NCBI RefSeq assembly: GCF_052425735.1
Contig: NC_135767.1
Span: forward strand, 22,196,001-22,259,347
DNA: 63,347 bases
Reading direction: 5' to 3'
Source of the DNA: Oculina patagonica
Taxonomy: Eukaryota
Every line of letters begins with the position of its first letter. Positions within the stretch are counted from its first letter, which is position 1. The translations under genes and the position numbers were made by a program. Below, piece after piece: positions 20,400 to 63,347 of this stretch. The notes beneath the pieces are model-generated. The model saw nothing but the letters and a program-made list of their open reading frames with translations, was not told the DNA's origin and ran no database searches.

Positions 20400-20855
20400 A
20401 TGGCGAGTAACTCATCATTAATGAAGAGAATTATCTCCCTGCTGTTACTTATCATACAAGATCGGGTCGGCAGCACAAGTCTTGGAGGTGATATTATTGT
20501 AGATACCAACCTAATGCTGAATGGATCCCCGTATGTCGTATCTCAAGACCTTGTTGTAGCTGAAAACGCCACTCTAACAATAGAGCCAGGAGTCCAATTA
20601 CACTTCGGTGTTGGTGTGGCCTTAAAAGTAAAAGGTTCCCTGCAAGCGAAAGGAAACGCCCGCGAAAGAATCGTCTTCACTAAAACACCAATTAACAGCT
20701 CGGTAGATGTGGACAATTTGAACGTCACAGATATTTATAATGATGGCATCCGCTTGCGCAACGGGAACAGTTACAGCGATGGCCGGCTGGAGATTTTCAT
20801 AAGAGGAGAATGGGGAACCGTGTGCGATGGAAACTGGGATATGACAGATGCCGAG
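20400..20855 (+). CDS. Gene B exon 1 (signal peptide, SRCR start)
   Basis: [44 protein letters not shown]; donor |gtaaat. Confidence 0.9.
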
Positions 20856-35800: not shown

Positions 35801-38800
35801 ATTTTCAAAAGAATTCAGTTTGATTAAAATATTGTTTTTAAATTTACCAGACCTTTCAAAACCTGGGACTATGTACTTGTAAAATTCCATAATTTTGAAG
35901 TGAAACCGCAGTTCTCACTCATGGCTTTAGTTGCTAGTAGTTTTATCCAAGGTTGGAGAACATTGAAAGTGTGATTGATTTACAAAGTATATATTGATAC
36001 AAAGAGTCTACGCACTTCAAATGAGTAAATGGGTGAATAATAAGTGAATGTTTGCAATAATTTGTTTGTCGTGAACTCCTGGGGATTCGAACATGATAAG
36101 TAAAAATTATTGCTTAGCTCTAAAGTGTAAAGAAATATCTTCTAAAAGGGATGTACAGCATAGAAAAGGTAAGAAATTATACATAGCTTAAGACATAAAA
36201 AAGAGATTTAGCCTACTCACCTAATCATACCTCTGACACTGTTTCGCGCTCGACTCGAAGTCATGGAATAACCTGAGGAAATGGAACGATGTACGCGTCC
36301 ACCACACATTCCATCTCAACCTTTTTTTATGTCCGAAGGCTTGTATTGTATGTTAGGACAAGTTTTCGATAAACTGAGCTCAACAACAACAGGAGAGAAG
36401 ACTTCGAAGTGGACCGTTGAACAAGTTGTGAATCATTGTCACTTTCAAAATGGACGCCAAATTCAAGCACACACGTAAAACCGCTGACCCTTAATAGCGA
36501 CGTATAACAGTGCCCAGTCCACCTCTGAGGCTCGCAAGCCGATCGCATGAAAAGTCAATGAAAGACTTATAGAATGTGTTCGAGCTTCACGGTAACAATT
36601 CCATGGATTTTATAATAGTGTTTATAAATTGAACGAAGCACTGTTTTATTTAAAAGATAAGGTGTGGTTTTCACTTGCAAACAAGCAAAAAATTTAGATT
36701 CCGGGAGGTGGATCAATTTTTAGGATAAACCGAGGCGGGAGGCTAGGCCAATGAATGCAAGAAGCCTTGACAGTCTAATCTTATAGTTGGAAAAGCTAAC
36801 TGTCAAAGCATCATGCTTGCATATATCAGTGCAATCTCCATTGTAAGAATAAAACAGTTATCTCTCGTGATATATAAAGACAACTCCCTGTTTTTTAATG
36901 CTATTAAAATGTTCATCAAAAAAGGTAATTACAGCGGACAGTTTGTGGCCGTGTAAAAAAAAAAAACAGCTTAAACATATTCGGAAAGACATTTAAAAGT
37001 AGTTGAATTGTGCGTACAGAATTACTCGAATAGCCTTAAAGAAAAAGTAATGTTCTTAAAGAAATAAAAGGCGCGTTAAGATTGACTCTGAGTAAAGAAA
37101 GTTAAAGGTCCGTAAAGAACGGTTCGTAAAGAAGCGTAAACAATGTTAAAGATTCGTAAAGTTTTGACAACGAAACTGATCATAATAGTTTTAATTCTAC
37201 TCTGATCGACGATTTATCACTTCTTTTAGCATTTCTCTTATTAGAAAGTGGTGAATTATATACAAGGCGCGTAAGAACTGTTTTCAGTGCGTAAAGAAAG
37301 TTAAAGGTACGTAAAGAACGGTACGTAAAGAATCGTTAAGAATGTTAAAGACGCGTAAAGTGTTAACAGTGAAGCTGCTCAAAATATCTCTAATTCTACA
37401 TAAGACGGATGATGTTTCACTTCTTTCGGTATTTCTTTTCATAGAAAGTAGTGAATTAGCTTGAATAATATCCATCGAGTTCTTTATCCTTTACGAACAT
37501 GTAATATCCTTTACGCAGTCTTTACGCGTTCTCTGCCGTTTACGCATCTTTACGGAACGCGAACTTGTCCGTAAAGAAAAGGCCACATATTTACGAATAT
37601 TTACGCAAGCGGTAAAAATGCGTAAATTCGTGTTTTCATGCTGTGATTAAGAAAATTGAGGAAATCACATTTTTTACAATCTTTAGATGACCAAGATCAG
37701 AAAACAGAAATTTCGCGAAATATATTTCGCGCAAACGCTAGCGCTGCGATTTCGAAAGAAACCAACCGTGAAAGCAACATGTATTCATTTTGACGATATC
37801 TTTTTTAATTCATAGATATGCCATGTACATATCAGTATGGCTTTTGCGGCTGGCAGACATTCACCAACATGTCAGTCAATAGAATTAATGTCACGCGAAC
37901 ATGGATAACATCGACGAAAAGTGATTACACTTACTTCTCATTTCAAGGTACGTGCATGTCTCTATACAAAAGCTATAACTGGGAACGGAGATCGTGAGCG
38001 TGGTATCCACGCAAATCCATGCATATGTGTACCATTTTGTGATGTGTACCATTTTGTACCAGTTTTTTAAAGGGCCACCATTCTTTTTTACCTCACGATG
38101 CTCACCTCTAAATACCACTTTGTTACGGTCTCCGTCCACGATTATGGTTCCTGCTTTATATTATTTAGGAATGAAAGCTATACACATCATTTCTTCGGTG
38201 TAACATTGCAGTGTGACATGTCAGCCCACACAATGCAATATTATCGAGGTACTTGCTTGTACAAAAAGTTATAATAATCATGTATCCAGTTTCAACTCAA
38301 TTTAGCAATTAAGTTTAATGAGAAATTTTCCATTTCAGGAAAATCGTTATACATCGGTAACGAACGGCAGTCATATGTTTGCGGGCGTGCAGCAATCATC
38401 AGTCCTTCAATCACAAAACTGTCTCAGTTCTGCTCTATTGTGTTCTTTTACCGCGTGGGTAGGAAAGGAAAAGCTGGACTTTCACTCTACATCCAAACTG
38501 GTTAGTTTTCATCATGGTCATTTGCGTGTATGTTATAAAAATCGTCCACGACAGGATCTGGCTGCAATGCTACTTTGGTATATATCAGGCGACCAAGTCA
38601 AATGCAATCAGTGCGACACTGATTTTATGATCATCGTTTTGTTGTTTTCATTTAGCCGGGTTTATTTTAAGACACAGTCTAGTTTCCCCGATTGCCGTTA
38701 GTGACTAGGAGGCTCATGGCTATGTGTGACTTGTATATTCTTTTTAGATTTAGGATTAAAAAATTTTTGTCTTTTTTTTATCTTAAAGGAGCTTTTCCCA

Positions 38801-41800
38801 CATTTGAACAAAGATTAATCTGGAAGGCCAAAAATATCGAGGTATCTCGGTGGAGAAAGGTGGTTGTAGACCTTCCCAATGATATTGACGAGTATAGACT
38901 TTTGTTTGAAGGCGAATGTGAAGATGGGAGATCTTACTTGAGAAATTACGTCACTGTCGACAACTTAGAATTAAGAAGCTGCCGCTCAAATAAAGGTTTG
39001 CTGTTCTTCCTCTTTTAAAAATAAATAAACCGCGTACTTAACCCTTAATTAATATGCTGAAATTTCTCCAAAAAACAGGTTTTTTTTAACCGTTAATGGA
39101 GTTTCTTGGCTCTACGGTCCTAAATTTCTCTAAACTTTGCTAGAAATGCACTTTCTGACACGGCAGTAGGTTTTTGATGCAATTTCCATGTAAAAATGTA
39201 CAACATTTTACTTGGCGCATGCGCATAAGCCTTTTTTTTGCTGAACCGTTCCGATTTTTTTCCCTTGCTCCTTTCCTTTTCGTTTTTCTCTACAGGACAA
39301 CTCGGATTAATATTAATCCGCGGATTATAATAATAATAGATTATAATAGGATTATTATAATCCAGTAATAGATTATTATAATCTAGTAATAGATTATTAT
39401 AATCCAGTAATAGATTATTATAATCCAGTAATAGATTAAGGCACGGCAAAAAATTGGAAGGATTAGATTATTATTAATATTATAATCCGGATTAATATTA
39501 ATCTCTATTATAATCCCGATAAAATTCCTTGAATGTTCGGATAAAAGATGCACTATTTGACTATTTGACAGATATGTATATGACAAACACACTGCAGACT
39601 TAAAACAAAGGACTGACAGAACATAAGTCACTAATCACATCCGTCAATTGTAAATTAAGGTGACGGGCCTACACGACTCCTACACTGTACGTTCGTAACA
39701 TTTGTACCTTTGCCGTTCCATCTTAAGTTCAGTCTTTCGACCTTATTTGCATCTGACTTCTTTCTGAGGGTACTGTTTTTATTTGGAGGCATTTTGTATT
39801 GAATAGAGCCTCAAGATTGTGTCCAAGGAAGAGTCTAGAGGTCATTAGTCCGCGCTGCGTGGTTCCCGTTTGTAGAGTTGAATGACACCTCTAAATCTGT
39901 ACTCTGCCACGTTGTGCTAGTTCAGTTTGTTTTGGCTCAATTATATTTGCAAGATATGCTTTAGGCTCAAAATGTTCGCACTGGAAGGACAAGATAAGAT
40001 ATGAAATGTTCCGTGAAAATGTAAACTACTTGCATTTTATTTACGCCGAGCCCTGCATTTTAATCAATACTGTTGCAAGATGTATTGTCTTATCACGGAT
40101 TATCTTGGTCCGGCTTCACCACAGACTGGTTCAACTTTACTATGAAAAATCTGAAAGTTGGTTTCAGAGAGACACTCTGTGTTGTGAAGGCTATGCTTCT
40201 TGCACTATTTTGATCAAGCGCTCTGTCTTTTTAGCTCGATGTTTAGGATTTTTTACCTCCCTTGTTCGTTGCGTTGGGTTGGCACCATTTGAAATCTTCC
40301 ACGCGCAAGTCTGTTTACTATTTTGCGTTTTGTATATGCCAGTATATGGTTCAGTTTGGAAGCTTTGAACTAGGATTGAGTTGTTGAGATTAATTATTAA
40401 GATTAATATTAATCCGATTAATATTAATCGTACATACGATTAATATTAATCCTAATGGATTAAGGCACGGCTCAAACCTCAGTAATAGATTATAATAATC
40501 TATTACTGGATTATAATAATCTATAACTGGATTATAATAATCTATTACTGGATTATAATAATCATTAGGATTAATATTAATCCGATTAATATTAATCCGA
40601 GTTGTCCTGTCTCTACTTTCTTATTCTCCCTATCTTTTACTCTGTGCACCCCTTCTACTGGCCTGAAAAAGTTTGATCTTAATCAGTGGAAAACCCTGGA
40701 AAGGAGACCATGATCAAATACGGGTATATTGGCCTGTTTTAGCACCAATTTTACACCAAAAGCTGATCACGTTTTTTTTTTTTTCGATTAGCTCTGTCAG
40801 AATGCAGTCAATAGTCAAGACGGATACTCCTGTGGAAAGATCTATCCAAACTCTATAAGCTGCACGTCACAAAAATCTGCTGACGTGTAAATTGGTGACG
40901 TCATAAGTGGCTGAATGGCCATTCCTCCAAATCCCGGAATAATCCGGACTTAGCATATTAAGGGTTAATTTAGGATACATTAAATGCCATAGCAGTGAGG
41001 TTGTCGTAGGGCATGGCTCTTCTGCAGTCTCGGCAGCAGAGAGTTATGATTTAAAAAAATCTCAAAAATTACTAACAGTTCTATTTTTGACGATCGCCGA
41101 AATGATCAGGCCTAAAACAATTTGATTCATTTTTGTCTATTTCAGTACCGTTTAAATGTTTTCTACCTTAGTGACTGAGGTTGTAAACTTTTCAAAGTGA
41201 TTAAATTATCTTTTAACTTTTATGCCAAGATTATTCATGTATATCGTATATAACGTATTAAATAGTTTTAGCCAAACCTAAAAGCGGAGCTCCCGGGTAA
41301 TTTACTTTGCCCTTCACTGACCTTAAAAAAAATAGGACTTGAGCCCGCGATCAAATAGAAAAACCATTTTCCCGTCAGCGGTCAACTTTAAAAAAAAACG
41401 TGACCTCGATGAGTTATACACCTGAGCCCGCGATATGGTCACGTGATGCTGGTCAGCGGACACCTTGTATTGACTGCTGTCAATTGACCATAACTTGGAT
41501 GCCCAGTATCAAAGAGGTTAGGGTTAATCAGGCTCCTGGGTTAATCTATTTCTAGAGTGCACGACGTACGTACGTCGTACGCGCCCGCGAGCAATGCCGC
41601 TAGCCATGATGACCATGAAAACTCAAGTTCATGGTTTTCCTAATTCTGTAGATTTTCTACGGGTATGGGGCTCCGCTATCATCAACCATGGTAATTTACC
41701 GAAATACTTTTTTTAACCGCACCCAATTGTCAAGTAGCCAATTAAAAGCCAAAAACCAAGTCAGTGACCTGATATCGCCGAATTATTGGTCGAAGGAAGG

Positions 41801-44800
41801 TACGGCAAAACTCGAATCGTGGCACGATTAAACGAGCCTGTTCTACTCAGTGCCGATTAGAAAGGTACGATTAAATCTAGTTTTATCTAAATACTTTCTC
41901 TTTTCTGCAGGAGAACACCGCATTTCTAACAGTGTATTCAGTGGCAGCATCCTCCAAGCCATAAACTATACTTCTGTGGCCGATGGAAGCGATAAACGAC
42001 CTAGTTTCACAATTGAAAGGTGTAAAATCACTGACACGGCTATCTCTGCCACAAACGTCAGCCAAAATAGCGCTATTTCACTTGATATTCAAGACAATAA
42101 ATTCACGCTCGCCAACAACTTTATCTCTGGAAACCGTTTAGGTGGCATTCATGCGTGGTTAGGGCGAAGCGATACAACAAACTTACCAAGAAGCTTGATA
42201 TACGGCAACACGTTCTCTAGTAATGCAAACGGAACAATTCTCGTGGAAGGAAGAATCGGAAGGAAAAGCAGTTTTGTTAGCACTGTGGACAACATATTTG
42301 AAAGCAATCTGGGCAATGGTAGCACCATAAAACTTTCTGAGGTACAAAGCGAGATCATAAACAATTTTATCTACAACAACTCTGGGTTATTCACGTTAGA
42401 ATACAACTCTTCCAGTGATCGGCCCAAAGGACAGAAGTGTGAGTTAAATACATTCTATCTCAACAAAGGTCTTGGACAGAGCTATGGTGTGACTGTTTTG
42501 TCCAACGGACCAATGGAATACCAAAAAAACAATTTCAAGAATCCGTCGAATCTTTACGAATTTAGTTCAACAACACAGACAGTTTCTGAGCCCATTGATG
42601 CAACACAGAACTGGTGGGGCGTTAAAGGGGATGCATTGGTTGCCTCACGCATCTATGATAAAAAGGACGACTACAGACTTGCAGCTGTGGAATTTAGACC
42701 ATATGAGAAGTGGCGGCCAAGAAACATTTTATCACGTAAGTACGAGAGGGGCTGTGTCCTGTAAAATCTGGTCATAGCTTCGGGATCAGGAGGCCGGGGA
42801 TCGATTCCGACCAATGAATACAAAGTAAACAGTACTTCTATGCACTTACGGCTTCGGTATGAGATGGCCACAAAACAATTAAAAATTTTCCCCACTGTTG
42901 GTACAGGGACTATTATTATATTGTTTTTACAATTATTGTCTTTGTTCGATTCCTTACTTTGTTTACTGGAAAGAGCCCGACAAGTGAACGTATAGAACCC
43001 AGCTTTTTTTTTTTAATTTCAGGTTAGTTTTTAATAATAGTTTTTAATTCTTAGGTATTTTTCGTTTTATTGTATATAGTCTTATTAAGTATTTTTAATC
43101 TTAGTTAGGACCTTTCTGAAAACCACTGTATAGTGAATGAAGGCTTCCTAATAAAAGATTATTATTATTATTATTATTTAGCTTGCAAAGGCGGCTTAAC
43201 GGACAGCAGCGACTCTCTTTTGTAAAAACGTTTCACTCGTTTCGTGAGATTACGGATAGGGTAACTCGAAGCTATTCCAATTCGAGTAATATAAATTGTT
43301 ATATTTTATGTAGTTGTCGCACTAACTGTGTTGATATTATTATTCAGCTTACTGTCCCGCCAACTGGCAAAACGTAAGATCGACGTGCTTTGTGTTTAGA
43401 GGTGGAAGTAGGACGCTAATGGAAGCCAAAGAATACTGCCAGGTTAGCAATTTACTAAGGCAGCTGTTATCGTTAGTATCTAAGTAATACGAGACCACGT
43501 GTTTTAACTTCTTATCGGCTTAATGAAGATGTGAGGCGAGGTTTCTTGTCAACAACTCATGTGGTTTGTTCCACGCGATCTTAACTGCATGCCTTTCAAG
43601 AAATAACAATAGCTACGATGTTCTGTGAGGCCCACTGCTTCATCATCCTCCAAACCCATACTGCACACCCTTGTGATCCCAGTTCGTGATCACTGACTAA
43701 ATACATAATCCGAGAGAGTGCTTGTAGGACGTCAGCCAACAATAATAATTGACAAAATCTTCTAGAACTCAGTTTTTTGGAGATGCACCAAAATGGCACC
43801 TGTATTTGAGAAACAGAAAACATGTTCCGTGTTTCTGTCCAGCTATTAAAAACAGGAGGGGAAGTCTGGGAAAACGAGAAATGCTGTTGGAACACCAGCC
43901 GATAGGCAAGGTGTTTTCTAAAACCTCGGGGGTGGAAGCGGAATCATTGGACTTTGGATATTCATGATTCCTGTCTTATTTTACCTCGATGATTCATGAT
44001 TCATTTATAAATTTTATTCAATATTCATGATTCATTATCATTCTTTTCACCCAGCTTTCAAAATAACGTGTTACCAGTTTCTGTTGTTTTTCACTTACAG
44101 GCTGGTTGCGCATTCTGGTTCCCTGCTAACAGAGTCTCCTTTTCCAAGTGGAGACTCTTCTGGCATGGAAATATGCCGGAAGGCGATGTAAAATATTTTC
44201 AGTCATCAAATTATTTCTAAATACTCATTGTGGGTAACATACTTGATCACTGTGAAGCCAAGGGTACAGTCGTGTTTCCATTGCTTTCCTATAGGGGGGT
44301 CTGGGGCATGCTCCCCCAGGAAATTTTGAAAATAATATGCTCAGAAATGCGATTTCAGGCCATTTCTGAAAGATATTTGTCAAGAATCTAGTAAAGTTTA
44401 CTTTTTGCTACATTCTATATTCACAAGCAATCAATATCGATGGAAGCATTCATTTGTTATTCATGATTCTTTTGACCATCTCCGTTATTCATGATTCCCA
44501 AGTTTTAAACACAAAAATTCATGATTCCTACCAATTTTACAGCTATGATTCATGATTCATGATTCATGATTCCGCTTCCACCCCCGATAAAACCAGCCGC
44601 ACACTAGAGCAACTAGCTGAGCTATTCGCCTGACGTGCTCGCTTGCTCAGCCATTTACTCACTGCACATTTCACCGCAGACAGTGAAGAAAGTGCCTAGC
44701 GAGCTTGATTCGGAAGCCGCCATGTTGAAGCACGTGAGCATTTTGGGTGTTTTTATTGATGAGTTAAAATTTCTGGCTTAGCAAGTAGCTCACGTCGCCC

Positions 44801-47800
44801 GCACAAGTTGAGGTTTTTACCTATCGAGGCAAAAAATATCAAACACGATAAATATTTTCTTCAAGGCCTCGCGAGGTAACGCACGCGAGACGGTTAGCTC
44901 TGCTGGATCCTATAGTGTGCGGCCGGCTTAATCCTCTTTATAACTGCTTCTAAAAAAGAGGGCACCTTTAAATATGTCGCCATATTACTGTTGTAGAAAT
45001 TATAATATAAGGAGATCATAGAGGAGAAAAGCGGTCGTCAGGCGAAAAAGTGCACAATTTAATTTTGGCCACGAACGTAAAATTTAGATTATGTAGCCCT
45101 TGAGTCATAATAATACGGTAGAATGTTTCCAAAGTACACAATTCGTTCTGCCATAATTTTGTGAACGTTGTATATCGATTGTGTTATAGTACTATGGAGG
45201 ACATGTGGCATCGACTTATATACCAGAAGATATGGACTTTATCAACATGGCAATGCAGGCACCAAGACCAGATGGAAAACCACCTGTGCCTATGTGGATA
45301 ACAACAGAGGAAAACGCGGTAAGTGCTTATTCTGGGTCGAAAGAGTAACTATATAATAATGTTCTATTGTTGTGTCCTTGACTCTTCTTCGCCCGTCTGT
45401 AAATTGTGATATTAATTTTAGAGACATCTCTCTTTACCCAGTAGGGTGCTTCTCATTAATCACAACTGGCCGACTGGTGTGGTGCTTTTGAATGTTAACT
45501 GGGTCTTTTCCATACGATTTTGTCCCACAAATCTACCGCAACAGTGGATAATACTTATGTGTTAGACTGATTTGACAGGACAAATCTGACTAAAAAAACG
45601 GAGATCTCTTTTCGAATAAACCGGTCTGGCTGGCTAGTTCTGACTAATGAAAAGCGCCCCCAGTTAGATAAATGACCTTAGGTCGTATTGTGTGATCGTC
45701 CGGGTGAGAGTAGTTCTGAGAAGAACTGTTGTTGGTGACTGATGTTTCGACAACCTGAGCGGAAGTCATCATCTTCAGAGCCAAGTGACTTGAAGATGAA
45801 GATGACTCTGAAGATGACTTCCGCTCAGGTTGTCGAAACGTCAGTCACCAACAACAGTTCTTCTCAGAACTACTCTCACCCGGACGATCACACAATACGA
45901 CGTGACCTACTGATACTCCTGGCCAAACCATTTACTATATAAATGACCTGGTTATAAATTGTTAAGGTAACCACGAAGAATACTGGACTGCAAACTCCGA
46001 TGAACTAGAATCCATGAGGGGACGTTTTACTATATAGACTCTCAATAAACGCTTCATGACATGAGAAACCATGCATAAACATTGACCTGGTAGACCAATG
46101 AAGTGAGCGCTTGACTCCATCAGCTCAATCAGCAAGATCAGCAAGCCAATAAAATTAGTTTTATAGTGGAATAGTATTTCACTATCGTGCATTAACACAT
46201 AATATAACACACGCTTGCTCCATTTCTTTCTTTGCTTTAATTTGTCTCTTATATAAAACGCAAACTTGTTACTTTTTGACCAGATAAAGCGTCGTTTAGT
46301 CTTCGAGTGAGCAGCATGCAGCTGTGTTTTAATGGAGCAAAACGTTAACTTTGCCAATGCTGATTAGTGATCGACCAAAATAGGATAATGTTTCTCACAA
46401 TGAAAGATGTAATTCTGTTCAATTCTACAGGTGGAAGGTAAAAGTGGTAAACGAAGAAAACAGCCGTGTACCGTGATAACACAGGACAGGGTTCAGAAAA
46501 TCGTTCCGTGCAGCAGTCTTTATCCCTTTGTTTGCACAACAGCAGCTCGTAAGCTACATGTTTTCAAATAAAAAAAATCATATGGGTGATACCATTTTGA
46601 CAGAAAAGGCACCCCTTTCGTATATCTTTTACTGACAAAAGGTACCCCTTTCATATACTGAAAAGACAGGACAAATGTCTAAAACAGGAAGTCTTGATGC
46701 CATTTTTATGTAGCGTTTAATAAATTTAAATGATACCTCCATAAGGTGTGTCTGTTCCAAATATTTTAATTGAAGGCCTTTTTAAATACCTAAATGAGCG
46801 ATATCCCTACTCTTTTCTATACCTTAGCTTGTGAAATTCCGACCCTTTTATATACCTGAAGCATGAAAAAGGTACCCCTTTCGGGCGGAGCCTCCCCGTA
46901 TAGGCCAATATAGGGAGTGCCCCCCCCCCCCGGTTTCCATACCTTTTAATTCTTGTATACGCCCTTAATGTGTTTTGCGGTTTGTCCATTGCAAAATATT
47001 ACGGGATGATTGGACATTTCGTATTTAGTTGTTTTACTTTTAGAACAGTATTCTCACCAAGAACTTAAGTCACTCTGCTATCAGTAAAAACTTTAAGGAT
47101 TCTATTTTTTATTTTTATTGACAGCTCCTGCTATTCAATGCTATGTATGCACTGACCATCCCGAATTTACTGGAGGGACCAAGTGCGACAACGAAAACAC
47201 TGGAAAGATCACTTGCCCTATGAGTTATGATAAATGCATGATAATGAAATACACCATGTCACTTGGACAAATGGGCTCAGTATCAGGAGAGCTTAGGAAC
47301 TGCTCCAACAGTCCTTCTTGTGACCCGAAAAGCGACTTCTACAGTAAGTGAAAGAATAGCTATTATTTCAAGGTTTTTTTCTTTATTACGGTGCAACAAA
47401 AGAGAATTTGCAATTGATGCAAAATCACAGTAGCTGTATACCTCAGTTGCGTGTTCTTTATATGTTTCTTGGCCAAAGATTTTTTTCTTTTTTGATAAAG
47501 TCATTTTGCCAAAAAGGGTCAAAATGTTCTGATATAATAACGTAGACATTACTAGTCTCTTAATTGGAAATAGTTGAGCATCAGAGTAGTGACTTATGTT
47601 TCCGTGGCTGTTGACTGAATTGCAACTACAAACGTTCACTGAAAATTTTAAGGGGAAGTGACCTGCTGACTGAACCAGTCAAGTTTACACCCAGGGATGT
47701 GAATTGATACTGACAAATCGCTTGGAGTAACCTGCTAAAATCTCGCAAGGTCACTTTCCATGCACTTAGCTTTACCCTAATTATAGATTTGGTGTGAACT

Positions 47801-48147
47801 TAGAGCCCGAAGTGCCGTGCACAGTACTATTAATTTTTGACAATCTTTTGTTCTTTTTTTTTTTAATTCCAGCCTGCGCTATGTCAAACATTACTGGCAT
47901 GTTGACTGACTGTTCGCTTGAATGTTGTCAAGGAAACCTGTGCAACCTGCCCGGGGAGAAACCAACAACTAAGCCAACAGCAAGTGCAGTTGTACTCAAA
48001 CCACCTAAACCAACAAGTACCACCTTGGTTTATAATTCAACCGACCAGACGACACACAAACCACCCAAACCAAAAAGTGCAGGATTGGAATTGGCTACAA
48101 GTTCAAGCGCCATTTTGACGGCTTTAGTTCTAATTATGTTTGCATGA
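20400..48147 (+). CDS. Gene B: bark beetle/Anakonda-like giant secreted protein (3 SRCR/beta-helix/CUB-like modules, MAM, C-type lectin) predicted to end in a Ly6/uPAR domain + GPI signal; about 2981 aa
   Basis: Coding exons 20400-20855, 21331-21481, 21785-22245, 24211-24469, 24804-27566, 28296-30989, 37816-37947, 38339-38500, 38789-38995, 41911-42735, 43348-43442, 45190-45318, 46431-46548, 47125-47343, 47873-48147. Total 8946 bp, all GT-AG, frame conserved. The join 46548->47125 is predicted from phase only. Confidence 0.8.
21034..21283. mobile_element. hAT-like MITE in gene B intron 1
   Basis: TAGGGGT..ACCCCTG ends and many GCTCGC subterminal motifs; absent from the paralogous intron of gene A (about 6715). 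Confidence 0.65.
21331..21481 (+). CDS. Gene B exon 2 (SRCR core)
   Basis: [43 protein letters not shown]; cacag| and |gtaagt boundaries. Confidence 0.9.
21785..22245 (+). CDS. Gene B exon 3
   Basis: [21 protein letters not shown]...VNCAK; ttccag| and |gtatgt boundaries. Confidence 0.9.
22470..23660. repeat. Inserted repeat in gene B intron 3 with internal ~240-bp tandem duplication
   Basis: Absent in the gene A intron; ccacattgcatt..agttgaacgagt..gcaag occurs twice (about 22689-22925 and 22930-23152). Confidence 0.6.
24211..24469 (+). CDS. Gene B exon 4 (CUB-like)
   Basis: [35 protein letters not shown]. Confidence 0.85.
24804..27566 (+). CDS. Gene B exon 5 (beta-helix, SRCR 2, CUB-like)
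   Basis: Lies within ORF 24767..27634; 2763 bp, phase 1-1; [33 protein letters not shown] motifs. Confidence 0.92.
28296..30989 (+). CDS. Gene B exon 6 (beta-helix, SRCR 3, CUB-like)
   Basis: Lies within ORF 28205..31018; [36 protein letters not shown] motifs; donor AAGG|gtaagt. Confidence 0.9.
32346..33620. mobile_element. PIF/Harbinger-like TIR element (TAA TSD) nested in the CACAG element
   Basis: About 60-bp TIR TGCAT(C/T)AGTCAATTGAAACCCCGGCCCCCCGAC; TAA at 32343-32345 and 33621-33623. Confidence 0.78.
32735..33400 (+). pseudogene. Degenerate Penelope-like reverse transcriptase fragment
   Basis: Frameshifted peptides [81 protein letters not shown]. Confidence 0.72.
34479..34709. mobile_element. 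Kolobok-like MITE
   Basis: TTAA|AGGACCC ... GGGTCCT|TTAA. Confidence 0.6.
35211..35497. mobile_element. Harbinger-like MITE
   Basis: TAA|AGGTCTCCACA ... TGTGGAGACCT|TAA. Confidence 0.7.
35714..35777. mobile_element. 64-bp mini TIR element (TAG termini, Academ/hAT-like)
   Basis: TAGCCTG..CAGGCTA flanked by the 8-bp duplication GGTGTTTG. Confidence 0.65.
37816..38995 (+). CDS. Gene B exons 7-9 (MAM-like domain): 37816-37947, 38339-38500, 38789-38995
   Basis: [68 protein letters not shown] matches the MAM consensus pattern; three phase-1 exons. Confidence 0.85.
39042..40964. mobile_element. piggyBac-like MITE interrupted by a second element
   Basis: TTAA|CCCTTAA..TATGCT ... AGCATATTAAGGG|TTAA; related copies end at about 18950 and 10413. 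Confidence 0.7.
39293..40609. mobile_element. TIR element with subterminal 21-bp tandem arrays
   Basis: CAGGACAACTCGGATTAATATTAATC at both ends; TCTCTA duplicated on the flanks; (ATAATCCAGTAATAGATTATT)n at left and inverted at right. Confidence 0.8.
41911..42735 (+). CDS. Gene B exon 10 (beta-helix)
   Basis: Lies within ORF 41850..42764; [16 protein letters not shown] motif; ctgcag| and |gtaagt boundaries. Confidence 0.88.
43348..46548 (+). CDS. Gene B exons 11-13 (C-type lectin-like domain): 43348-43442, 45190-45318, 46431-46548
   Basis: [23 protein letters not shown]|[15 protein letters not shown]|..[17 protein letters not shown] gives the CTLD cysteine/Trp pattern. Not in the ORF track; read manually. 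Confidence 0.82.
43926..44587. mobile_element. MITE with 7-bp TSD
   Basis: TCGGGGGTGGAAGCGGAATCAT TIRs; TAAAACC on both flanks; TTCATGA heptamer repeats. Confidence 0.75.
45679..45938. mobile_element. Penelope-like inverted terminal-repeat insertion (near-perfect ~100-bp-arm palindrome)
   Basis: Arms about 45682-45780 and 45806-45901; 11-bp TSD ATAAATGACCT at 45668-45678 and 45939-45949. Confidence 0.78.
45803..45847 (+). ncRNA. Minimal type I hammerhead ribozyme motif
   Basis: TGACT-CTGAAGA-T-GAC..GTC-GAAA-CG-TC-AGTCA; GUC cleavage triplet, palindromic ACGT stem III. Confidence 0.72.
46590..46933 (-). repeat. Dispersed MITE-like repeat; related head at about 19975-20070
   Basis: The reverse complement ccggggggg..ctccctata..ggcctatacgggg resembles ccccggggggatactcccttatatgggctatatagg; repeated tacccctttc motifs. 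Confidence 0.55.
47125..48147 (+). CDS. Ly6/uPAR (three-finger) domain exons 47125-47343 and 47873-48147 with Pro/Thr/Lys stalk and GPI signal; predicted last exons of gene B
   Basis: IQCYVC..C..C..C..RNC..C..|[11 protein letters not shown]; hydrophobic C-terminus [13 protein letters not shown]; AATAAA near 48312. Confidence 0.88.
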
Positions 48148-48576
48148 TTTAATGAAAGTGTACGCTATATCGATCGCTTGTCCTTTTTTAATACTTTTAT
48201 GAATGAAACTCTAGCTATCATAATTCTAAAGCTAGTACGATATTGTTTCCAACTTATTCTAGTTTGTGACACTTTCTGAGCTGTATAAGAAATAAGCCAA
48301 TTTTTCTTTTCAATAAAATAGTTGTTGCATTTTGACTTGTGATACCTTTGGTTTACATGCTTAATTTGCCAAAATCATTTTCTGCCCCTCCCACCCCTCC
48401 CCCCCCCCCCAACACACACGCACACACACCACTTATCTAAAATCAAAATCTCACTTATTACTAGTCGTCTCTTATGAGAAAAAGTGTTTCCTTCTTACCT
48501 TTATCTGTTGCGCTCTACCTTTTTTACTTACAGCGAGAAACGCTCTATATATACGTAACGTTACTCATGTACTGAA

Positions 48577-50398: not shown

Positions 50399-53300
50399 TT
50401 AAGCACTGATATAGAGGACTAAAGCTGACAAAATGACTCCAAAGCTTGCAGCCAATCCCAATCCTGCACTCGTGGGTGGAGGAAGTGTCACTTGTTTGGT
50501 TGAATTAAAAGGTGCATTGCACAGGTCTCCTTGACAACATGCAAGCGAACAGTCAGTCAACATGCCAGTGATGTTCGTTAAAGTGCAGGCTGTAAAATGA
50601 TGAACAACGGGATGTCAAAATTGTGCTACATATATTTTTCGTTCCCGACTGGTTAATTTCTTGGCATTTATGGTAACATAAAAGACAAGGCAAGGTAAAA
50701 TTCCAAATTCTACCTAAGGAATTGAAGGACTTAGTAGATTGTCGTTGCTTAACTATTCAAGTAAAATGAAAAAAAAAATGGGGATTTTAGCTCAGATGCT
50801 TACCGTAATGATTCGATTAAGCGCCCTCCTTCCAATAAGCACCCCCTTCCGAATAAGCGCCCCCCCCCCCCCCCTTCGAATGTGTTTTTGTCAATAAGCG
50901 CCTCTATTCCAATAAGCGCCCTCATTCTAATAAACGCCCCCATTCTTATAAACTCATAAACATTCACGGTACCGTACATGTATATATTTACTGCTAAAAT
51001 GAACAATTCTTTTAAAAGTAACTGAACTTTCAACAATTTGTTACTGTTACAGTTTCTGTTGATGTTAGTTATTTTAATATCTATAAAAGTTTTGTTTTGA
51101 ACATTTGGTTGTTTCTCAAAAAATTAAAGAGCGCCCTGTCCCCAATAAGCGCCCTGTCTCGAATAAGCGCCCTCCCGGGCGCTAAATCGAATCATTACGG
51201 TAGTTGTTGAAATGACTGCTGTGCTATTTCTGTTAAAAATCCCTAAACACTCTCTTTTTATAGAAAAAACGCCATCATATACATGATGCTATGGACAATT
51301 AAAGACGGCCCCACAATACCACTGATGCTTCTGTAGCCTCAAATCTATTGCATTACTGTACCATATATAAGTTATAATGAAAGGAGCAACAAACACATTC
51401 CTTGCCAAAATATTATTCTCGCACTTACTGTAGTAGTCGCTTTTCGGGTCACAAGCGAGACTGTTGGAACAGTTCCTTTGCTCGATCGATACGGAGTTAT
51501 TTTGTCCAAGTGACATGGTGTATTTTATTGTCATGCATCTATCATACACCTGGAGGCATTTGATCTTTCCCACTCTGGGATCACTGCACTTGGTTCCTGC
51601 TCCGGGTTGGTTGGTGCACTCATAGCAGTCAATACCAAAAGCTGTCAAACAGAACGAAATATCTGAGTATACTGTTACATGTACGGTCTGATTTTCCTTT
51701 TAAAGAAAAGCAACTGAAATATATGTCTAAAGAAGGGTGTGCAGGGGTAAAATGGGAACTGGGATTTAGGCAAAGACTGTCCCTAAAATACTCGGCAGGT
51801 TTTCATATTTGGAGCAACTTTTTTCCGTTCTAGCAACTAGACCGAAGTTTCTAGCAACTAGACCGAAGTTTCCCGAAGATTCTCCGATTTCTGTTCGATG
51901 TCCATACGAACGATTCCGATCGTTATTCGAACTTGTCCGAAGATAACGAAGTTTCCCGAAGACTTCCAAGGAGATTCGAAGATAAGGTTTCCGTCTCACT
52001 CACGAGACGGAAGATCTTGACAAACCAACTTTACGCTGCGCTCGCGATATTTTTTGCTCCAAAATGTGTGTGTGTGTGTGGGGGGGGGGGGGTAATTTTC
52101 GTTTGTTTTCGGGGGGGGGGGGGGTGGGGGCTACAGTCCCCTGCCCCCTGCACCGCCGCCTATGCGAAAACAACTCAAGGTTGGATTGATTTATAAAATG
52201 GCACTCGAACGAAACATGTAGAATAAACACTATCTTGTTTTCTTATGTGGCTATTTTTTGCGTGTGCATCCATTTTCCTGTCGACTTTTCATCCCACAAA
52301 AGTCTCTGTTGTTGTAGCCTTTTCAAGATATTTTTGCCGGCTTCGCAGTTCTTACCAGAGTGAACGGAGTACGAGGTAAATCGTCCCTTTTATTTTTATG
52401 CTGGGAATTGAACTTAAGATAATAAAATCATTTTGGTGGTCAAACTGACTATAGGATGTAAAAAGAAATGATTGATTTTTGCTGACAGAAAGGAAGCAGG
52501 CAGACATGTGCACAACATTTCCTTTTCAGGTTAAGCATATCGAAGCATATCTTTCTCGATAAATAAAGCAACATAATTTACATTTATTTTGAAGGCAGGC
52601 AAATAAACCTAAAGTATCATTTGATTGTTTTGTCCATTTCAACTTAATTACCAGACGGCATCAAACGTAGAGCCAGGACAAGTGACAAGAAGAAAATGTA
52701 AAGTTCGCACGGTTTGTGAACTCGGGGAGCAGATGTACAACATTCTGATCATTCTATGGTGCTACCCAATATATATTGCATGCTGGTTTTCACTGTCACG
52801 CAATCAAAAAATAAATTCGAAACCCTTCAACTACAGAAGCTATGAATTTCAAATATTATAGATGATAAATAGATAAACAATTTCTGCAAGCTTCGGGTCT
52901 GTGCGGTGTATCGTTCGCGAGTTATTTTCCGAACCTTTCCACGCCATAAGGGACACAGTGGGAGTTATAGCTAGTTATGGCCGCCGTGATGTCAGAGAAA
53001 CCATCTGGAACTCAATTCTGTTTACAACAGCGGCTGTCCTTGGCTTAAGAGGTAGTACACTTTCACATAAACACCACTTATTATATCTGAAATTTTCTAT
53101 CTGCACAAAATGGAAAGGAAAGGCCTTTTTTCAAACAAAACAGGTTTGTCACGGCAATCAGCTTACATACGACGGAGAACTCAAATGTTCAAAATGCTCT
53201 GTTTTAAAAACTAATGACGCGATCGATCTGGAAATTTGCAAAAATATATATTTTTAGTTTATCTTTCGCCTAATGACAACGAAAATTTAGCAGGCCTAGT

Positions 53301-55442
53301 GAATTTTGATTTCAGAATTTTATGACGTAACATGAAAACCAAGAATAGGTCATACAGACTGGGTGTCATAATGTTATGATTAAAATCATATGTCGTATTT
53401 ATATAAAGTGGCTTATTCGAATCAAATATGTAAATAACATTTTGAAGTCTAGCAAAATGTGCGATCATGAACGCGTAAAATAGTCTGTGATACAAATTTA
53501 GCTGTTATTCTACACTTAAGTTGTATCCTCTAGTGCCACGCTACAGTTTACTGACGCCTTCATAAAAAGGGAGGACTTGAATTAAAAGAGGATTATACCA
53601 GGCGTAGTCAATCGATAGAAATCGATATCGGAAATCAATCGATACAATCGATATCACTCGATATCAATCACTGATTGATATCGATTGATATCGGTAAGTG
53701 ATTGATATCGAGTGATATCGGTATTCGATAACAATCGAACTCACAAAAAATTTCTTTATCGATTGTTATCGATTGATAAAATCGATAACAATCGATAGCA
53801 ATCGACAGCAATCGATAAAATCACTAAACCCAAAAAGTCCCTTAAGAAATATTCGTCTCAAATATGTTACATGCCGTTACTACCTAGTAAAAGTAAACGA
53901 TACGAGATTAGCGTTTAAGTGATAAACATTTTATTATTCAGATTATTTGGAGTATCTAGTCCTGCCGGAGTCTGTGCAGAAAATTATGTTTACCATCAGG
54001 TGATCCTCTTGGTCAGTTTGTGTTTCTAAAATATTTTAACTTGTCCAGCCATCCCAGCGCTCTCAATTGCATCTTGGATCTCCTTCATAGCGTTCTCGCG
54101 TAGATGAAATCCAACATGATCCTACTACTGGATTACTTTTTATTTCTTGCTTACTCTGCGATTTATTACGATTACCGGTACGCTTCTTTCTTAATGCAAT
54201 TAACTGAAATCATAAAAACACTGATTCTTTTGTTTATTTTGCTTCATATTTATGGCGTTGCTATAGCGAGACTAGAGGGTTGCACACCGCTACTTCGGCC
54301 GCAGCACCTTGTTCTTCTTTGAACCGCGCTGATAAAGCTGTTATGTTACTGTTACTGTTCTTGTTATTTTAGTATCAGCTTGTTGGTATTTGCAGTCGCA
54401 TATCCACGATTAAATGACCCAATAAAACTATAAAAACAACATCCTGTCAATGTTTATCTTGTAGAGATTGTCAAAAATAGTTTCCGATAAAAATCGATGA
54501 CAATCGATAACAATCGATAAAACAATCCTTATCGATTTCCGATGGAAATCGATATCAATCGAACTCACAACTTTTTTTCTTTATCGATTCCTATCGAGTG
54601 GTATCGGAAATCGATATCAATCTTCGATTGATATCGATTGCTGTTGATAGTTATCGATTATCGGTTTATCGATTGACTACGCCTGGATTATATTATAATT
54701 CAACCGCAGCTGAAGTCAAGCAAAATTTTAGCGCGCTCTCCGTTAGTCAGTAGCGACTAACCATACTTAGAAACTAACTTTAAATCTTGTGAAGTGTAGA
54801 AATGTCATAGAAAATTAAAACTCTAGGTCCGAAATCTCCAATAAGATAGCTCAAAAGACGAACTCAGAAATTGCATACTGTGACAAAATCAGTCAGCTGT
54901 GACAGCAGAAGGACTTAAATTGTTCCTGTTGATTGCACTGATCGAAAAATCAGGACCGGTTTTCTTTGACGCACAGCTATCTACAGGGGAAAATCGGAAA
55001 CTTTTAATGGTTGCCTTTAACTTTCAAAAGGCTTTTAAATTGATTCACCCGTATGGAAAATCGACTAGTATAAAAATACAAGTAATTATTAATGCGAACC
55101 GCCAGACTTACCTGACCATTAAACGCCCAAGTGCTTTCGCTTGTTGTGATTTTAATTTGTTTCGTTTCGCTCGCTTCGGTTTTTACCGCAATTTCGTTTC
55201 GTGTTTCGCTCGTTTCGGTGGTTTCGTTTCGTTTTTTTCGGGTTTCAGTACATGCGGCGTTCGACCACGTGTAAAAAGTGTTCTCTCGCGAACATTCATT
55301 GACTTTAGAATATTCTTCTAGAACGATTCATGCAAGAAATGCAAATATTTTATGGCACATTCAGTCAAAACGAGTTGAACTTACCAGTCGGCATTATACA
55401 TAGAGCCAGTAGAGCGACAAGAAGGAAAGGTAAAGTTTCCAT
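50399..55442 (-). CDS. Stand-alone GPI-anchored Ly6/uPAR (quiver/sleepless-like) protein; exons 55442-55385, 51641-51429, 50589-50399
   Basis: METLPFLLVALLALCIMPT|AFGIDCYECTNQPGAGTKCSD..RNCSNSLACDPKSDYY|[48 protein letters not shown]; phase-1 introns; minus-strand AATAAA at 50299-50304. Confidence 0.88.
50803..51200. mobile_element. Tc1/mariner-type MITE in Ly6 intron 2
   Basis: TA|CCGTAATGATTCGATT ... AATCGAATCATTACGG|TA; AATAAGCGCC repeats. Confidence 0.8.
53599..54685. mobile_element. hAT-like non-autonomous element in Ly6 intron 1
   Basis: CAGGCGTAGTCAATCGATA TIRs; 8-bp TSD GATTATAC/GATTATAT; ATCGAT-rich subterminal regions. Confidence 0.8.
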
Positions 55443-61401: not shown

Positions 61402-63213
61402 CCCAGAGTTGTTGTAAAAAAAATTATTTATGATCTCGCTTTGCTCGTCATCAACTCTTATGGTACTTCCATAGCCCAAGTTGCTTTCAAAGATGTTGTT
61501 CACTATGCTAACAAAGCTATAGTTGCAATTCAACTCTTTTTTCTCTTGTATGAGTATTGTTCCGTTTGCATTACTATAGAACGTGTTGCCGTATATCAAG
61601 TTTCTTGGTAAGCTTGCTCCGTCGCTCCGCCCTAACTGCGCTTGAATACCCCCTAAAATGTTTCCAGAGATAAAGTTATTGGCGAGAGTAAAATTGCTGT
61701 CCTGAATATCAAGAAAAATAGCCGCGTTCTTTTGAGGTACAACTGAGTTAGAGGCTGGTGTGCCAGTGATTTTACACCTTTCAATGGTCAGACTAGATTG
61801 TCTGCTGCTTCCATCGTCCACAGAAGTGTACTTTATAGCTTGTTGTACGTTGTCACTTAATACACTGTCGGATATGCGGTGTTCTGCAGGAAAAAATAGA
61901 TAAAAGATACCATTAAAAAGCGATTTGCAATCTTTGCCGGTTGACTAAAGAAGCGCATTTTAATTATCAAAGAATAATAAGATAGCTTATTCAAAATTAA
62001 AAGTCTTTCCGCAGAATCAAACTATAGTTCAATCCCTTTCTTAGTAAGTCTTGTGTTTAAGTTAAGTGCCTTTTTAATACGACCAACTCGTTAATACGAC
62101 TTGATTTTAGTCACTTTTTGATGCTTAGAATATCGTGTTTCCGCCACGTGTAAACAAATATTTTTTTAGCTTCTGCCGTGTTACCACAAAGGTCATGGAT
62201 TCGAATCCCATCAGAACCCCCGGATTCTTTGGGTCTACGCAACTGATGAAATTTAATTTACTAACAAAGTTTTTTTTTTGCATATCATCATTTATTTCAA
62301 ACCAAATTATAGCAAATGCTTGGAGAATAGTTTACCTTCAACTGAGCAGCTTCTTAGTTTCAAGTTGTCAATAGTCACATAGTTCCTCGAGAAATAACCT
62401 GATGTCTCGTTATATTCGCCTTCAAACAACAGTCTGTACTCATCAACATCATTGGGAAGTTCAACAACCACTTTTCTCCAACTCGATATCTCGATATTTT
62501 TTGCGCTCCAGATTAGTCTGTGACGAGTTGAGGGAAATTTCCCTTTAAGATAAAAACAAGTACAAAAGAGAAATACGAAAGTTTTGATGAGAAACTAGAC
62601 ATACAAGCCATACATAACCTTTAAATACTCTTGTCATCGAGTCTCCTTGCAACATTATAAGATTGACATGCAAATGTGTTTCATGCTTTATTCTCTTTCT
62701 AGTTATGTGTTATGCCGAAAAGGGATCTGAAGATGGATTTGAAAAATTTGTTGTTCGTTCGCATCACAATCTACAGACAAGAATTTCTGTTGTTGTAGAA
62801 AAAGTTCGGAAACAAGAAATAGTTGGATATTTTGCTAACGACCAAAGTTGTAAAATGTGACGTCATAGCTTCAGAAAATAACTCAGGCAGTAACTCTTCT
62901 GGGAAAGGAGCAGGACAGATCCTGCTCTGAATGATTTTTGCGCAACATTCACATTTGAGATTGAAGGAAAAAATTAAAAACAGTAGCAAGGATCATATAA
63001 ACAAATGATCGATAATGACCACTGAAAGAAAAAAACATAATATACACAACTAACCTGTTTGAATGTAAAGTGACAGGCCAGCTCTTCCTTGTTTTCCCAC
63101 GCGATAAAAGAACACTACAGAGCATAACTGGGATAATATTGTGATAGAAGGGCTGATGATTGCAGCACGCCCACCAACATTTCCAAAGTCATTACCAACG
63201 TATAGCCGTTTTC
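61402..63213 (-). CDS. Gene C: third bark beetle-like paralog, internal exons 63213-63055, 62542-62336 and 61883-(gap at 61401)
   Basis: Homologous to gene B exons 8-10: [24 protein letters not shown]; LIWSAKNIEISSWRKVVVELP..DNLKLRSC; [28 protein letters not shown]. Confidence 0.88.
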
Positions 63214-63347
63214 CTGAAATGGGAAAATTTAACAACGGGTGCTCAAAAATTTGCTGAATTTTACACGCACTCCATAGAAACGGCATTTAAAACTTTTGGA
63301 AAGTGGTTCTCAGTTATCTTAGGTGGCCAGGAAATAAAATCGTTTGA

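Follow-up and report, generated by a model that had tools for sequence, protein, structure and literature searches.

A transcribed Bark beetle/Anakonda-like gene of the coral Oculina patagonica that ends in a Ly6/uPAR domain and a predicted GPI-attachment signal

The window, i.e., the whole stretch of DNA analyzed here, comprises 63,347 nucleotides of Oculina patagonica contig NC_135767.1 (assembly GCF_052425735.1, positions 22,196,001 to 22,259,347), and all coordinates below are counted from its first letter. It contains a long, transcribed gene on the + strand (gene B, ca. 20400-48330), a small stand-alone Ly6 gene and a partial mirror copy of gene B (gene C), both on the minus strand. The features on which the analysis draws are the following.

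20400..20906, + strand: probable first coding exon of gene B, with an ATG at 20400, a 20-residue signal-peptide-like stretch and the start of SRCR 1 (3' end approximate)
24716..27631, + strand: giant exon inside a 972-aa open frame, beta-helix block and SRCR 2
28190..31015, + strand: giant exon inside a 942-aa open frame, beta-helix block and SRCR 3
37809..39015, + strand: MAM-domain exons of gene B, three coding pieces (ca. 37809-38060, 38290-38502 and 38689-38997)
41900..42735, + strand: third beta-helix exon of gene B, phase 1 end, donor GT at 42736
43348..43442, + strand: C-type-lectin-like (CTL) exon 1, phase 1 start, 77% aa identity to ACROYT_G034380
45190..45318, + strand: CTL exon 2, with splice sites and RNA joints on both sides
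46431..46548, + strand: CTL exon 3, phase 1 (one spare base), donor GT at 46549
46549..47124, + strand: intron of 576 nt, mostly interspersed high-copy repeat
47125..47343, + strand: Ly6/uPAR (LU) exon 1, 219 nt, phase 1 to phase 1, fingers 1-2 with 7 Cys, acceptor ttgacag|CT
47873..48147, + strand: LU exon 2, with CCQGNLCN, a Pro/Thr/Lys stalk and a GPI-type end; stop TGA at 48145-48147
48148..48332, + strand: 3' UTR of gene B, AATAAA at 48312; RNA contigs end at 48328 and 48332
50399..55442, minus strand: stand-alone Ly6 paralogue, inverted (signal exon 55442-55385, LU1' 51641-51429, LU2' 50589-50399)
61402..63230, minus strand: gene C, mirror copy of the gene B MAM and third beta-helix exons, cut by an N run (60902-61401)

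Pfam profiles recover from gene B three SRCR domains (20382-21501, within 24716-27631 and within 28190-31015), three Beta_helix blocks (21766-22260, both giant exons and 41832-42761), a MAM domain and a CUB-like piece, i.e., the ectodomain carries three repeats of SRCR plus parallel beta-helix. The probable first coding exon (SRCR 3.1e-08) aligns to the start of an Oculina paralogue gene. Of the giant exons, the first (Beta_helix 3e-24, SRCR 9.3e-09) has tblastn matches with proteins named bark beetle and the second (Beta_helix 9.1e-20, SRCR 2.9e-14) shares 63% aa identity with ACROYT_G034380 of O. patagonica. The MAM match (2.7e-04) lies in the last of the three pieces, with tblastn support from the Montipora protein P0188 and both Oculina paralogues, and the third beta-helix exon (3.9e-07) is 71% identical at the aa level to ACROYT_G034380/ACROYT_G034386 and 25-31% identical to proteins named bark beetle. 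The CTL exons are connected by RNA joints (43440(+2)->45188(+2), GT..AG, and 45317->46430), and the region they span (43348-46548) aligns to the CTL that directly precedes the transmembrane (TM) helix, both in bark beetle proteins (phmmer) and in the coral paralogues; the homologue of CTL exon 3 in the Oculina paralogues has the same end and the same phase. Homology-supported coding on the + strand extends from 20418 to 46535 and amounts to ca. 2,890 aa before the LU tail, a sum of homology-supported pieces that brings the total to roughly 3,000 aa (the 2981 aa given earlier came from the exon model of the earlier note).

The best full-length relatives of gene B are named "protein bark beetle(-like)" and come from insects, ticks, horseshoe crab, octopus, a nemertean and the sponge Oscarella; tblastn matches of such proteins to gene B are colinear, at an identity of only 25-31% over the third beta-helix exon. 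The names of the best hits would fit one-to-one orthology with the fly gene, while the low identity and the at least five or six coral paralogues weigh the other way. Like Drosophila Bark beetle/Anakonda, they have a giant ectodomain, three SRCR plus beta-helix blocks and one CTL before the anchor. Higher identity is found with the O. patagonica paralogues ACROYT_G034380 (P0199) and ACROYT_G034386 (P0200) (63-71% aa) and with the "bark beetle-like" proteins of Montipora capricornis (P0188 and P0198, 41-46% aa). The Oculina paralogues also follow the same exon plan (MAM, beta-helix, CTL1-3) with a phase-1 intron after ...SLYPFVCTT. The Bark beetle/Anakonda-like identity put forward in the earlier note thus agrees with the SRCR, Beta_helix and MAM profiles, the CTL alignment and the names of the relatives, and gene B is, on its predicted domain content, a member of a coral family of such proteins.

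The resemblance ends at the C-terminus. All relatives with a complete C-terminus (arthropod, mollusc, nemertean, sponge, Montipora and the two O. patagonica paralogues) end in a TM helix followed by a tail on the cytoplasmic side. Full-length bark beetle proteins combine a single TM helix with a tail of 200-360 aa, and most of their complete C-termini finish in ...ETAM, a PDZ-binding end (PMC5509417). In the Oculina and Montipora proteins a Ser/Thr stalk and the TM helix are followed by a shorter tail of ca. 25-70 aa, and in the Oculina paralogues stalk, TM helix and tail are all encoded in one last exon. Gene B, unlike the bark beetle proteins, has an LU domain and a GPI-type end, and a MAM domain too. 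Its transcript ends after the LU exons (at ca. 48330, downstream of the AATAAA) with neither TM helix, cytoplasmic tail nor PDZ-binding motif, and tblastn with the tails of the coral paralogues found no TM/cytoplasmic exon for it. Conversely, no LU domain occurs among the 150 best relatives or in the four coral proteins, and the 10 kb downstream of the Oculina paralogues contain no LU exon.

Read across the splice (47125-47343 plus 47873-48147, a joint contained within a single RNA contig), the tail runs from PAIQCYVC to CCQGNLCN with 12 Cys, i.e., an LU cysteine frame with the xCYxC start and CCxxxxCN end, and continues with the stalk and hydrophobic GPI-type terminus that the earlier note had described. 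LU exon 1, which has RNA joints on both sides, reaches Pfam QVR (Ly6-like) on its own only below threshold (E 0.006, 18 bits vs a cut-off of 27.3). A candidate omega site Ser-Ala-Gly, an 8-residue spacer (LELATSSS) and a 12-residue hydrophobic end directly precede the stop, an arrangement (small residues, polar spacer, terminal hydrophobic end) that makes a GPI signal by rule of thumb only. From these features, the gene B product may be GPI-anchored and may be shed.

The minus-strand Ly6 gene corresponds to the 153-aa RefSeq "uncharacterized protein LOC144628915 [Oculina patagonica]". The LU tail of gene B is 53% identical to it overall (60% for LU exon 1 against LU1'), all 12 Cys align, and both share the SAG and hydrophobic end; the earlier note was therefore right in taking the two LU exons for paralogues of exons 2-3 of this gene, which has kept its own signal exon. 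It lies inverted, an orientation that the earlier note did not mention. LOC144628915 matches Pfam UPAR_LY6 over profile positions 3-82 of 82 (1.6e-04, 22.5 bits vs a cut-off of 24.8) and LYPD3 in the PDB (E 0.002); its AlphaFold model is poor (pLDDT 44). Together with CD59, LYPD3 and the fly proteins Boudin, Coiled, Crooked and Crimpled, the fly members being required for septate-junction assembly (PMC8006247), it represents the small GPI-anchored Ly6 proteins, which share with the gene B tail the three-finger frame, CCxxxxCN, a short stalk and a GPI signal. These proteins are of ca. 150 aa and have their own signal peptide, whereas the LU of gene B joins CTL exon 3 instead of a signal peptide, caps the C-terminus of a roughly 3,000-aa protein without a signal exon and carries an extra 26-residue stalk insert.

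The joint between CTL exon 3 and LU exon 1 (46548->47125, GT..AG) was recovered in spliced contigs of RNA runs X1, X2 and X5 at word depths of 63.9x, 83.2x and 104.5x, respectively, solely in 60-nt contigs with 30 letters per side; the three runs represent two studies and two organism labels. RNA across 46548|47125, on whose absence the earlier note would have given up its claim, is thus present, and the joint connects a CTL exon ending in phase 1 to an LU exon beginning in phase 1, as had been read from the sequence. X5 additionally holds a variant joint with 15 other letters (TTTTA-PS vs TTAA-PP) and one more codon, in frame and at 221.5x. The flanking contigs run from an upstream exon through CTL1-CTL2-CTL3 (91.7x and 102x) and from LU1 through LU2 into the UTR (80.5x and 108.2x). 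Each of these long contigs breaks off precisely where its exon ends, indicating that the assembly graph branches there, and RNA support takes the form of separate contigs rather than of a single long molecule from ATG to poly(A) site. The joint has 70-80% of the depth of the flanking exon contigs; the remaining ca. 20-30% may represent unspliced RNA, an isoform polyadenylated within the intron or another partner. For the second of these, read-through past the donor at 46549 gives 7 codons and then a TAA at 46569, overlapping an AATAAA at 46567, so that an isoform ending there could arise. The CTL-LU fusion is real and supported by RNA.

Most of the intron between the two exons is taken up by a 33-nt direct repeat family (RNA-contig depth 680-4,768). 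The "MITE-like repeat" of the earlier note is present as a high-copy repeat, but terminal inverted repeats, which would have marked it as MITE-like, were not found in it. A similarity search with the signal exon of the Ly6 paralogue gave no + strand copy upstream of LU exon 1, the only copies being at 55442(-), 52694(-), 56546(+), 58950(+) and 59528(+). A de novo scan for an ATG, a hydrophobic stretch and a phase-1 GT donor, with the known copies recovered as controls, yielded no signal exon between 43443 and 47124 at the threshold that recovers the controls; a lower threshold brought up no more than three ORFs, all of weak hydrophobicity and with poor donors. Together with the tblastn of paralogue tails, these searches bear out the view that no TM or Ly6 signal exon lies between CTL and LU.

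We consider it quite likely that gene B is a tail-swapped, transcribed Bark-like gene with a Ly6 domain and a predicted GPI-attachment signal. Exons 2-3 of a Ly6/uPAR gene would occupy the place of the ancestral last exon (stalk, TM helix and cytoplasmic tail), the phase-1 donor of the last CTL exon being spliced to the phase-1 acceptor that normally receives the Ly6 signal exon. The predicted product would consist of a signal peptide, a ca. 2,800-aa triple SRCR/beta-helix ectodomain with MAM and CTL, the 12-Cys LU, a Pro/Thr stalk and the GPI-attachment signal; its tail would be cleaved at about Ser-Ala-Gly and a GPI put in place, leaving the protein in the outer leaflet without a cytoplasmic or PDZ link and, more tentatively, with a role in cell-cell contact as in Bark. 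Capture of the tail by exon shuffling, as proposed earlier, fits relatives that are TM-tailed after the CTL and the lack of LU among the 150 best of them. As the same-species paralogues have the same phase-1 intron and none has an LU, the swap appears to be specific to the gene B paralogue.

Alternatively, the joint could stem from conjoined, read-through transcription, the LU exons belonging to a separate Ly6 gene with an undetected first exon, the last exon of gene B having been lost and the CTL3-LU1 splice being a side effect from which hardly any protein, if any, is made. The exact breaks of the long contigs at 46548 and 47125, the incomplete depth of the joint, the signal-exon copies scattered nearby and an inverted LU copy (LOC144628915) that is a working gene in its own right, signal exon included, would all suit such a scenario. 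It is nevertheless improbable, given that no + strand signal-type exon was found in 43443-47124 by either search, that in three runs the joint accounts for the greater part of the depth on either flank, that a diverged allele or species keeps it in frame as well, and that the only listed intron-LU1 boundary contig is unspliced and has ca. 13x vs 326-743x for the exon (X5).

A tail-swapped gene B could also be a transcribed but decaying or neutral family member without a specific function, the anchor swap being an accident not yet purged. Bark-like paralogues number at least five or six in this coral, with nucleotide identities of about 75-80%, and gene C, whose exons are 77-80% identical to those of gene B (nucleotides; Pfam MAM and tblastn), has no detectable CTL or TM exon and looks truncated. 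Moreover, of the 26 listed codons in which the window differs from organism A, 17 change the amino acid, so constraint looks weak, yet no Cys or reading frame is lost. We give decay of gene B only a slim chance, as its 972-aa and 942-aa open frames are intact, no RNA-supported exon contains a stop, all 12 Cys and the SAG/hydrophobic end are retained, runs carrying two organism labels show similar expression and an indel leaves the frame intact, and between genes B and C the exons still align and the introns do not, which points to selection on the coding parts.

In flies, septate-junction assembly depends on Bark, located at cell vertices, and in addition on Ly6 proteins that are separate from it. 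A septate-junction link of gene B would follow by analogy with these Drosophila homologues, and with so many Bark-like paralogues gene B need not be the junctional one. We regard it as rather unlikely that the LU serves as a built-in Ly6 cofactor, so that a single molecule, GPI-anchored, targeted to rafts and releasable, would unite the two families that are separate in flies; if true, gene B would be a natural experiment in Bark-type vertex adhesion without TM helix or cytoplasmic tail. An account in PMC11698045 (citing Byri 2015) has the vertex accumulation of fly Anakonda depend on the ectodomain and not on the cytoplasmic domain, so that the ectodomain suffices for it and an anchor swap need not abolish a Bark-type role.

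With a junction role in corals that is putative and a family that is expanded, the locus carries moderate biological weight. A tail-swapped gene B would nonetheless provide a natural variant of a tricellular-junction-type protein without cytoplasmic links, which is relevant to how proteins of this type reach their position. It would also be a clean example, backed by RNA, of phase-1 exon shuffling that can be observed inside a gene cluster, and as one genome holds TM-tailed copies, the fused copy and a version of the donor gene that stands alone, the route of the swap should be reconstructable. T-cadherin (CDH13) and GPI-linked NCAM-120 belong to TM adhesion families but have a GPI anchor in place of the TM and cytoplasmic part; these gain the anchor signal only, whereas gene B appears to have acquired with it an entire additional folded domain derived from a different family.

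Gene B is a Bark-like paralogue in which the anchor has probably been swapped and a Ly6/uPAR (LU) domain captured. It is a very large gene on the plus strand, with its probable start at the ATG at 20400, and its features, together with those of the stand-alone Ly6 gene on the opposite strand, are as follows (CTL, C-type lectin; LU1' and LU2', LU exons of the stand-alone gene).

20382-21501, plus strand: SRCR domain (Pfam)
21766-22260, plus strand: beta-helix (Pfam)
24211-24480, plus strand: CUB-like piece (Pfam)
24716-27631, plus strand: giant open frame of 972 aa with beta-helix and SRCR (Pfam)
28190-31015, plus strand: giant open frame of 942 aa with beta-helix and SRCR (Pfam)
38683-39015, plus strand: MAM domain (Pfam)
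41832-42761, plus strand: third beta-helix exon (Pfam)
43348-43442, plus strand: CTL-like domain, exon 1
45190-45318, plus strand: CTL-like domain, exon 2
46431-46548, plus strand: CTL-like domain, exon 3, ending with one spare base, donor GT at 46549
47125-47343, plus strand: LU exon 1, acceptor ttgacag/CT, phase 1 at both ends
47873-48147, plus strand: LU exon 2, ending in a stop
55442-55385, minus strand: signal exon of the stand-alone Ly6 gene
51641-51429, minus strand: LU1'
50589-50399, minus strand: LU2'

The homology-supported coding sequence of gene B between 20418 and 46535 on the plus strand sums to ~2,890 aa (exon borders not all rebuilt), and the ~3,000 aa proposed in the earlier note is therefore reasonable.

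Parts of the window were present in twelve RNA runs, and contigs of four of these were placed on 43300-49299, where they revealed GT..AG splice joints at 43440->45188, 45317->46430, 46548->47125 and 47343->47873. The third of these is the junction that had been predicted between CTL exon 3 and LU exon 1, and RNA crossing it was found in runs X1 (63.9x), X2 (83.2x) and X5 (104.5x), i.e., in two studies and under two organism labels, in 60-nt contigs with 30 letters on either side. X5 carried a second form of the joint as well (46541->47130, 221.5x), where 15 other letters separate the two sides and which reads ...CTTTTA-PS-AI... versus ...CTTAA-PP-AI... and adds one codon in frame; contig ends in run X6 are consistent with this variant, the joint itself not being among those listed for that run. 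On the upstream side, a 633-nt contig in X1 and X2 (91.7x and 102x) joins an upstream exon to all three CTL exons, and on the downstream side a contig of both LU exons and the 3'UTR (80.5x and 108.2x) ends at 48328 and 48332, just past an AATAAA at 48312, which makes LU exon 2 the last exon of the transcript. RNA in which the Bark-like ectodomain is spliced to the LU exons, and which ends after them, is thus present. These results confirm the exon order given in the earlier note, and its fusion reading survives the refutation proposed there, an absence of reads over 46548-47125. Both long contigs stop exactly at exon borders, and the assembly graph must therefore branch there, with 20-30% of the flanking depth unaccounted for by the 46548->47125 joint. 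An unspliced X5 contig spans the border between the intron and LU exon 1 at ~13x versus 326-743x for the exon, and at least some of the branching is accounted for by pre-mRNA. If CTL exon 3 is read on past its donor (46549-46572), seven codons, RKLHVFK, are added before a TAA at 46569 that overlaps an AATAAA at 46567. Polyadenylation at this intronic signal would give a secreted Bark-like isoform without an anchor, and such an isoform could make up part of the depth that leaves the joint.

Once spliced, the LU exons read P-PAIQCYVC ... CCQGNLCN, followed by a Pro/Thr/Lys stalk, a 23-residue C-terminal segment and the stop. LU exon 1 alone gave a sub-threshold Pfam match to the Quiver/Ly6 family. 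The earlier note had also regarded the stand-alone Ly6 gene at 50399-55442 as a close paralogue of these exons with a signal exon of its own, and the comparison agrees: this minus-strand gene matches P0201 ('uncharacterized protein LOC144628915 [Oculina patagonica]', 153 aa), to which the gene B tail is 53% identical in amino acids, with 12 of 12 cysteines aligned, the SAG and hydrophobic end kept, and an extra 26-residue insert in the gene B stalk. P0201 itself covers the whole UPAR_LY6 profile in Pfam (22.5 bits against a cut-off of 24.8, E 1.6e-04) and matches human LYPD3 in the PDB (E 0.002), and its language-model neighbours, to be taken as leads only, are all Ly6/uPAR clusters; its single-sequence AlphaFold model, made without an alignment, has a pLDDT of 44, too poor for use.

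Could the LU exons start from a signal exon of their own, hidden upstream of 47125 on the plus strand? A similarity search with the Ly6 signal exon and promoter region recovered copies at 52694 (minus), 56546 (plus), 58950 (plus) and 59528 (plus) and none in such a position. Nor did a de novo scan (ATG, hydrophobic stretch and phase-1 GT donor, with the known signal exons recovered as controls) find one: between 43443 and 47124 no candidate reached the control threshold, and a lower threshold yielded three weak ORFs with poor donors. A relic transmembrane or cytoplasmic exon was likewise sought by tblastn across the whole window with the tails of P0188 (a 'bark beetle-like' protein of Montipora capricornis) and of the Oculina paralogues P0199 and P0200, and only chance matches were seen; of two weak minus-strand matches at ~56340-56570, one coincides in part with a signal-exon copy read in antisense and the other is interrupted by stops. 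These searches bear out the view that neither a transmembrane nor a Ly6 signal exon lies between CTL exon 3 and LU exon 1. The intron that separates them (46549-47124, 576 nt) consists largely of an interspersed repeat that contains direct repeats of 33 nt and reaches an RNA-contig depth in the thousands; the 'MITE-like repeat' of the earlier note holds as a high-copy interspersed repeat, but no terminal inverted repeats were found in it.

The relatives of gene B in corals end differently. P0188 was found in a 90% cluster, and a search with it led to another Montipora 'bark beetle-like' protein (P0198) and to P0199 (ACROYT_G034380) and P0200 (ACROYT_G034386) of O. patagonica. These last two share 63-71% identity with gene B across its final giant exon, MAM and beta-helix; across the CTL domain the values are 61% (P0199) and 55% (P0200). 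They would be paralogues of gene B in one genome, with 75-80% nucleotide identity in exons. In each of the four coral proteins the CTL domain is followed by a Ser/Thr stalk, a transmembrane helix and a cytoplasmic tail. The Oculina paralogue loci follow the exon plan of gene B, with the phase-1 intron after ...SLYPFVCTT at the identical place and in the same phase, and the next and final exon encodes stalk, transmembrane helix and tail, with no LU exon within 10 kb downstream. Across all the coral loci compared (L004-L009, the Oculina loci L008 and L009 included), no LU exon was seen up to 10 kb 3' of the Bark-like genes, although L004-L007, whose terminal exons were not located, weigh little. 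On these comparisons, the predicted LU/GPI tail is thus specific to gene B among the paralogues and not a general cnidarian form.

Outside corals, the third beta-helix exon of gene B served as query against 1.84 billion representative proteins, a library in which short fragments can stand for clusters and coral matches are exon-sized fragments; the P0001 contigs end short of the LU region. Long matches at 25-31% identity, named 'protein bark beetle(-like)', came from locusts, termites, ticks, horseshoe crabs, octopus, a nemertean and the sponge Oscarella. Wherever the C-terminus of these relatives is complete, a hydrophobic transmembrane segment is present, usually followed by 200-360 further residues (~50 in the Oscarella protein); most of them end in ...ETAM, and in the named bark beetle proteins the CTL domain directly precedes the helix. 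By phmmer, none of the 150 best relatives has an LU-like tail, which agrees with the earlier proposal of a captured one.

As to origin, gene B and gene C, a Bark-like gene on the minus strand (63230-61402, MAM and third beta-helix exons), are mirror copies in which the exons alone still align, at nucleotide identities of 77-80% for MAM, 77% for the beta-helix, 76% for LU1 and 80-89% for LU2. It therefore seems that a Bark-like gene and the LU exons behind it were duplicated together, as one inverted unit. Gene C runs into a stretch of Ns (60902-61401), and no CTL or transmembrane exon for it came to light between 55500 and 60900. Two histories are compatible with the data: the fusion may have preceded the duplication, the minus-strand copy later regaining a signal-exon module from 52.6-59.6 kb, or a free Ly6 gene may have lain downstream, a deletion in copy B removing the transmembrane exon and the Ly6 signal exon. 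In either case, the join works because it is flanked by phase-1 domain exons. We consider it a neat, reconstructable exon-shuffling event in an expanded family.

The gene B product would enter the secretory pathway and exchange its last ~22 residues for GPI at about Ser-Ala-Gly, so that the ~3,000-aa ectodomain would hang from the outer leaflet via the LU domain and a probably O-glycosylated stalk, with no cytoplasmic or PDZ link predicted. A passage of PMC11698045, citing Byri et al. 2015, states that accumulation of fly Anakonda at vertices needs the ectodomain and not the cytoplasmic domain, and septate-junction assembly in flies requires separate GPI-linked Ly6 proteins (PMC8006247); a junctional role is thus conceivable. 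Gene B is possibly a natural test of anchor independence. Between the window and organism A, 17 of the 26 changed codons listed alter the amino acid, with no cysteine or reading frame lost, which suggests fast evolution or weak constraint. Our literature search found no paper uniting Bark/Anakonda and Ly6 in one protein, or on coral bark-beetle-like genes; an automatic (RefSeq) model of the fusion may already be on file.

Several further observations concern the surroundings. The tail-to-tail arrangement of LU2 and LU2'-LU1' recurs at 99% identity in an independent, fragmented assembly (GCA_044670265.1, JADOBR010051401.1). The sole protein on file for that contig, P0151, is an artefact of prokaryote-style gene calling (a code-4 style ORF with TGA read as Trp) and, as an ORF on a genomic contig, gives no gene-model information. 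Gene A (minus strand, ~763-7347) is a third Bark-like gene with SRCR and beta-helix matches; it and gene B are arranged head-to-head, and at its 3' end it extends past the left window edge. On CM126644.1 of O. patagonica (~22.33-22.44 Mb; L008 and L009), further Bark-like genes with transmembrane tails form a tandem array; each of them is divided among two or three GenBank models, and in another annotation several are fused into a single 4,977-aa product. The Ly6 signal-peptide exon occurs in five copies within 52653-59581, in both orientations and with GTAAGT-type donors, that at 52694 being degenerate; the plus-strand copies have no LU body 3' of them in the window. Finally, a foldback element (45682-45901) with 92-nt arms, 98% complementary, and a 36-nt loop sits in the intron that separates CTL exons 2 and 3; one arm recurs at 98% identity in the paralogous locus L009 (27438-27536). 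RNA-contig word depth over the element reaches 1,786-14,913, and it is probably a MITE-like hairpin of high copy number that many transcripts contain.
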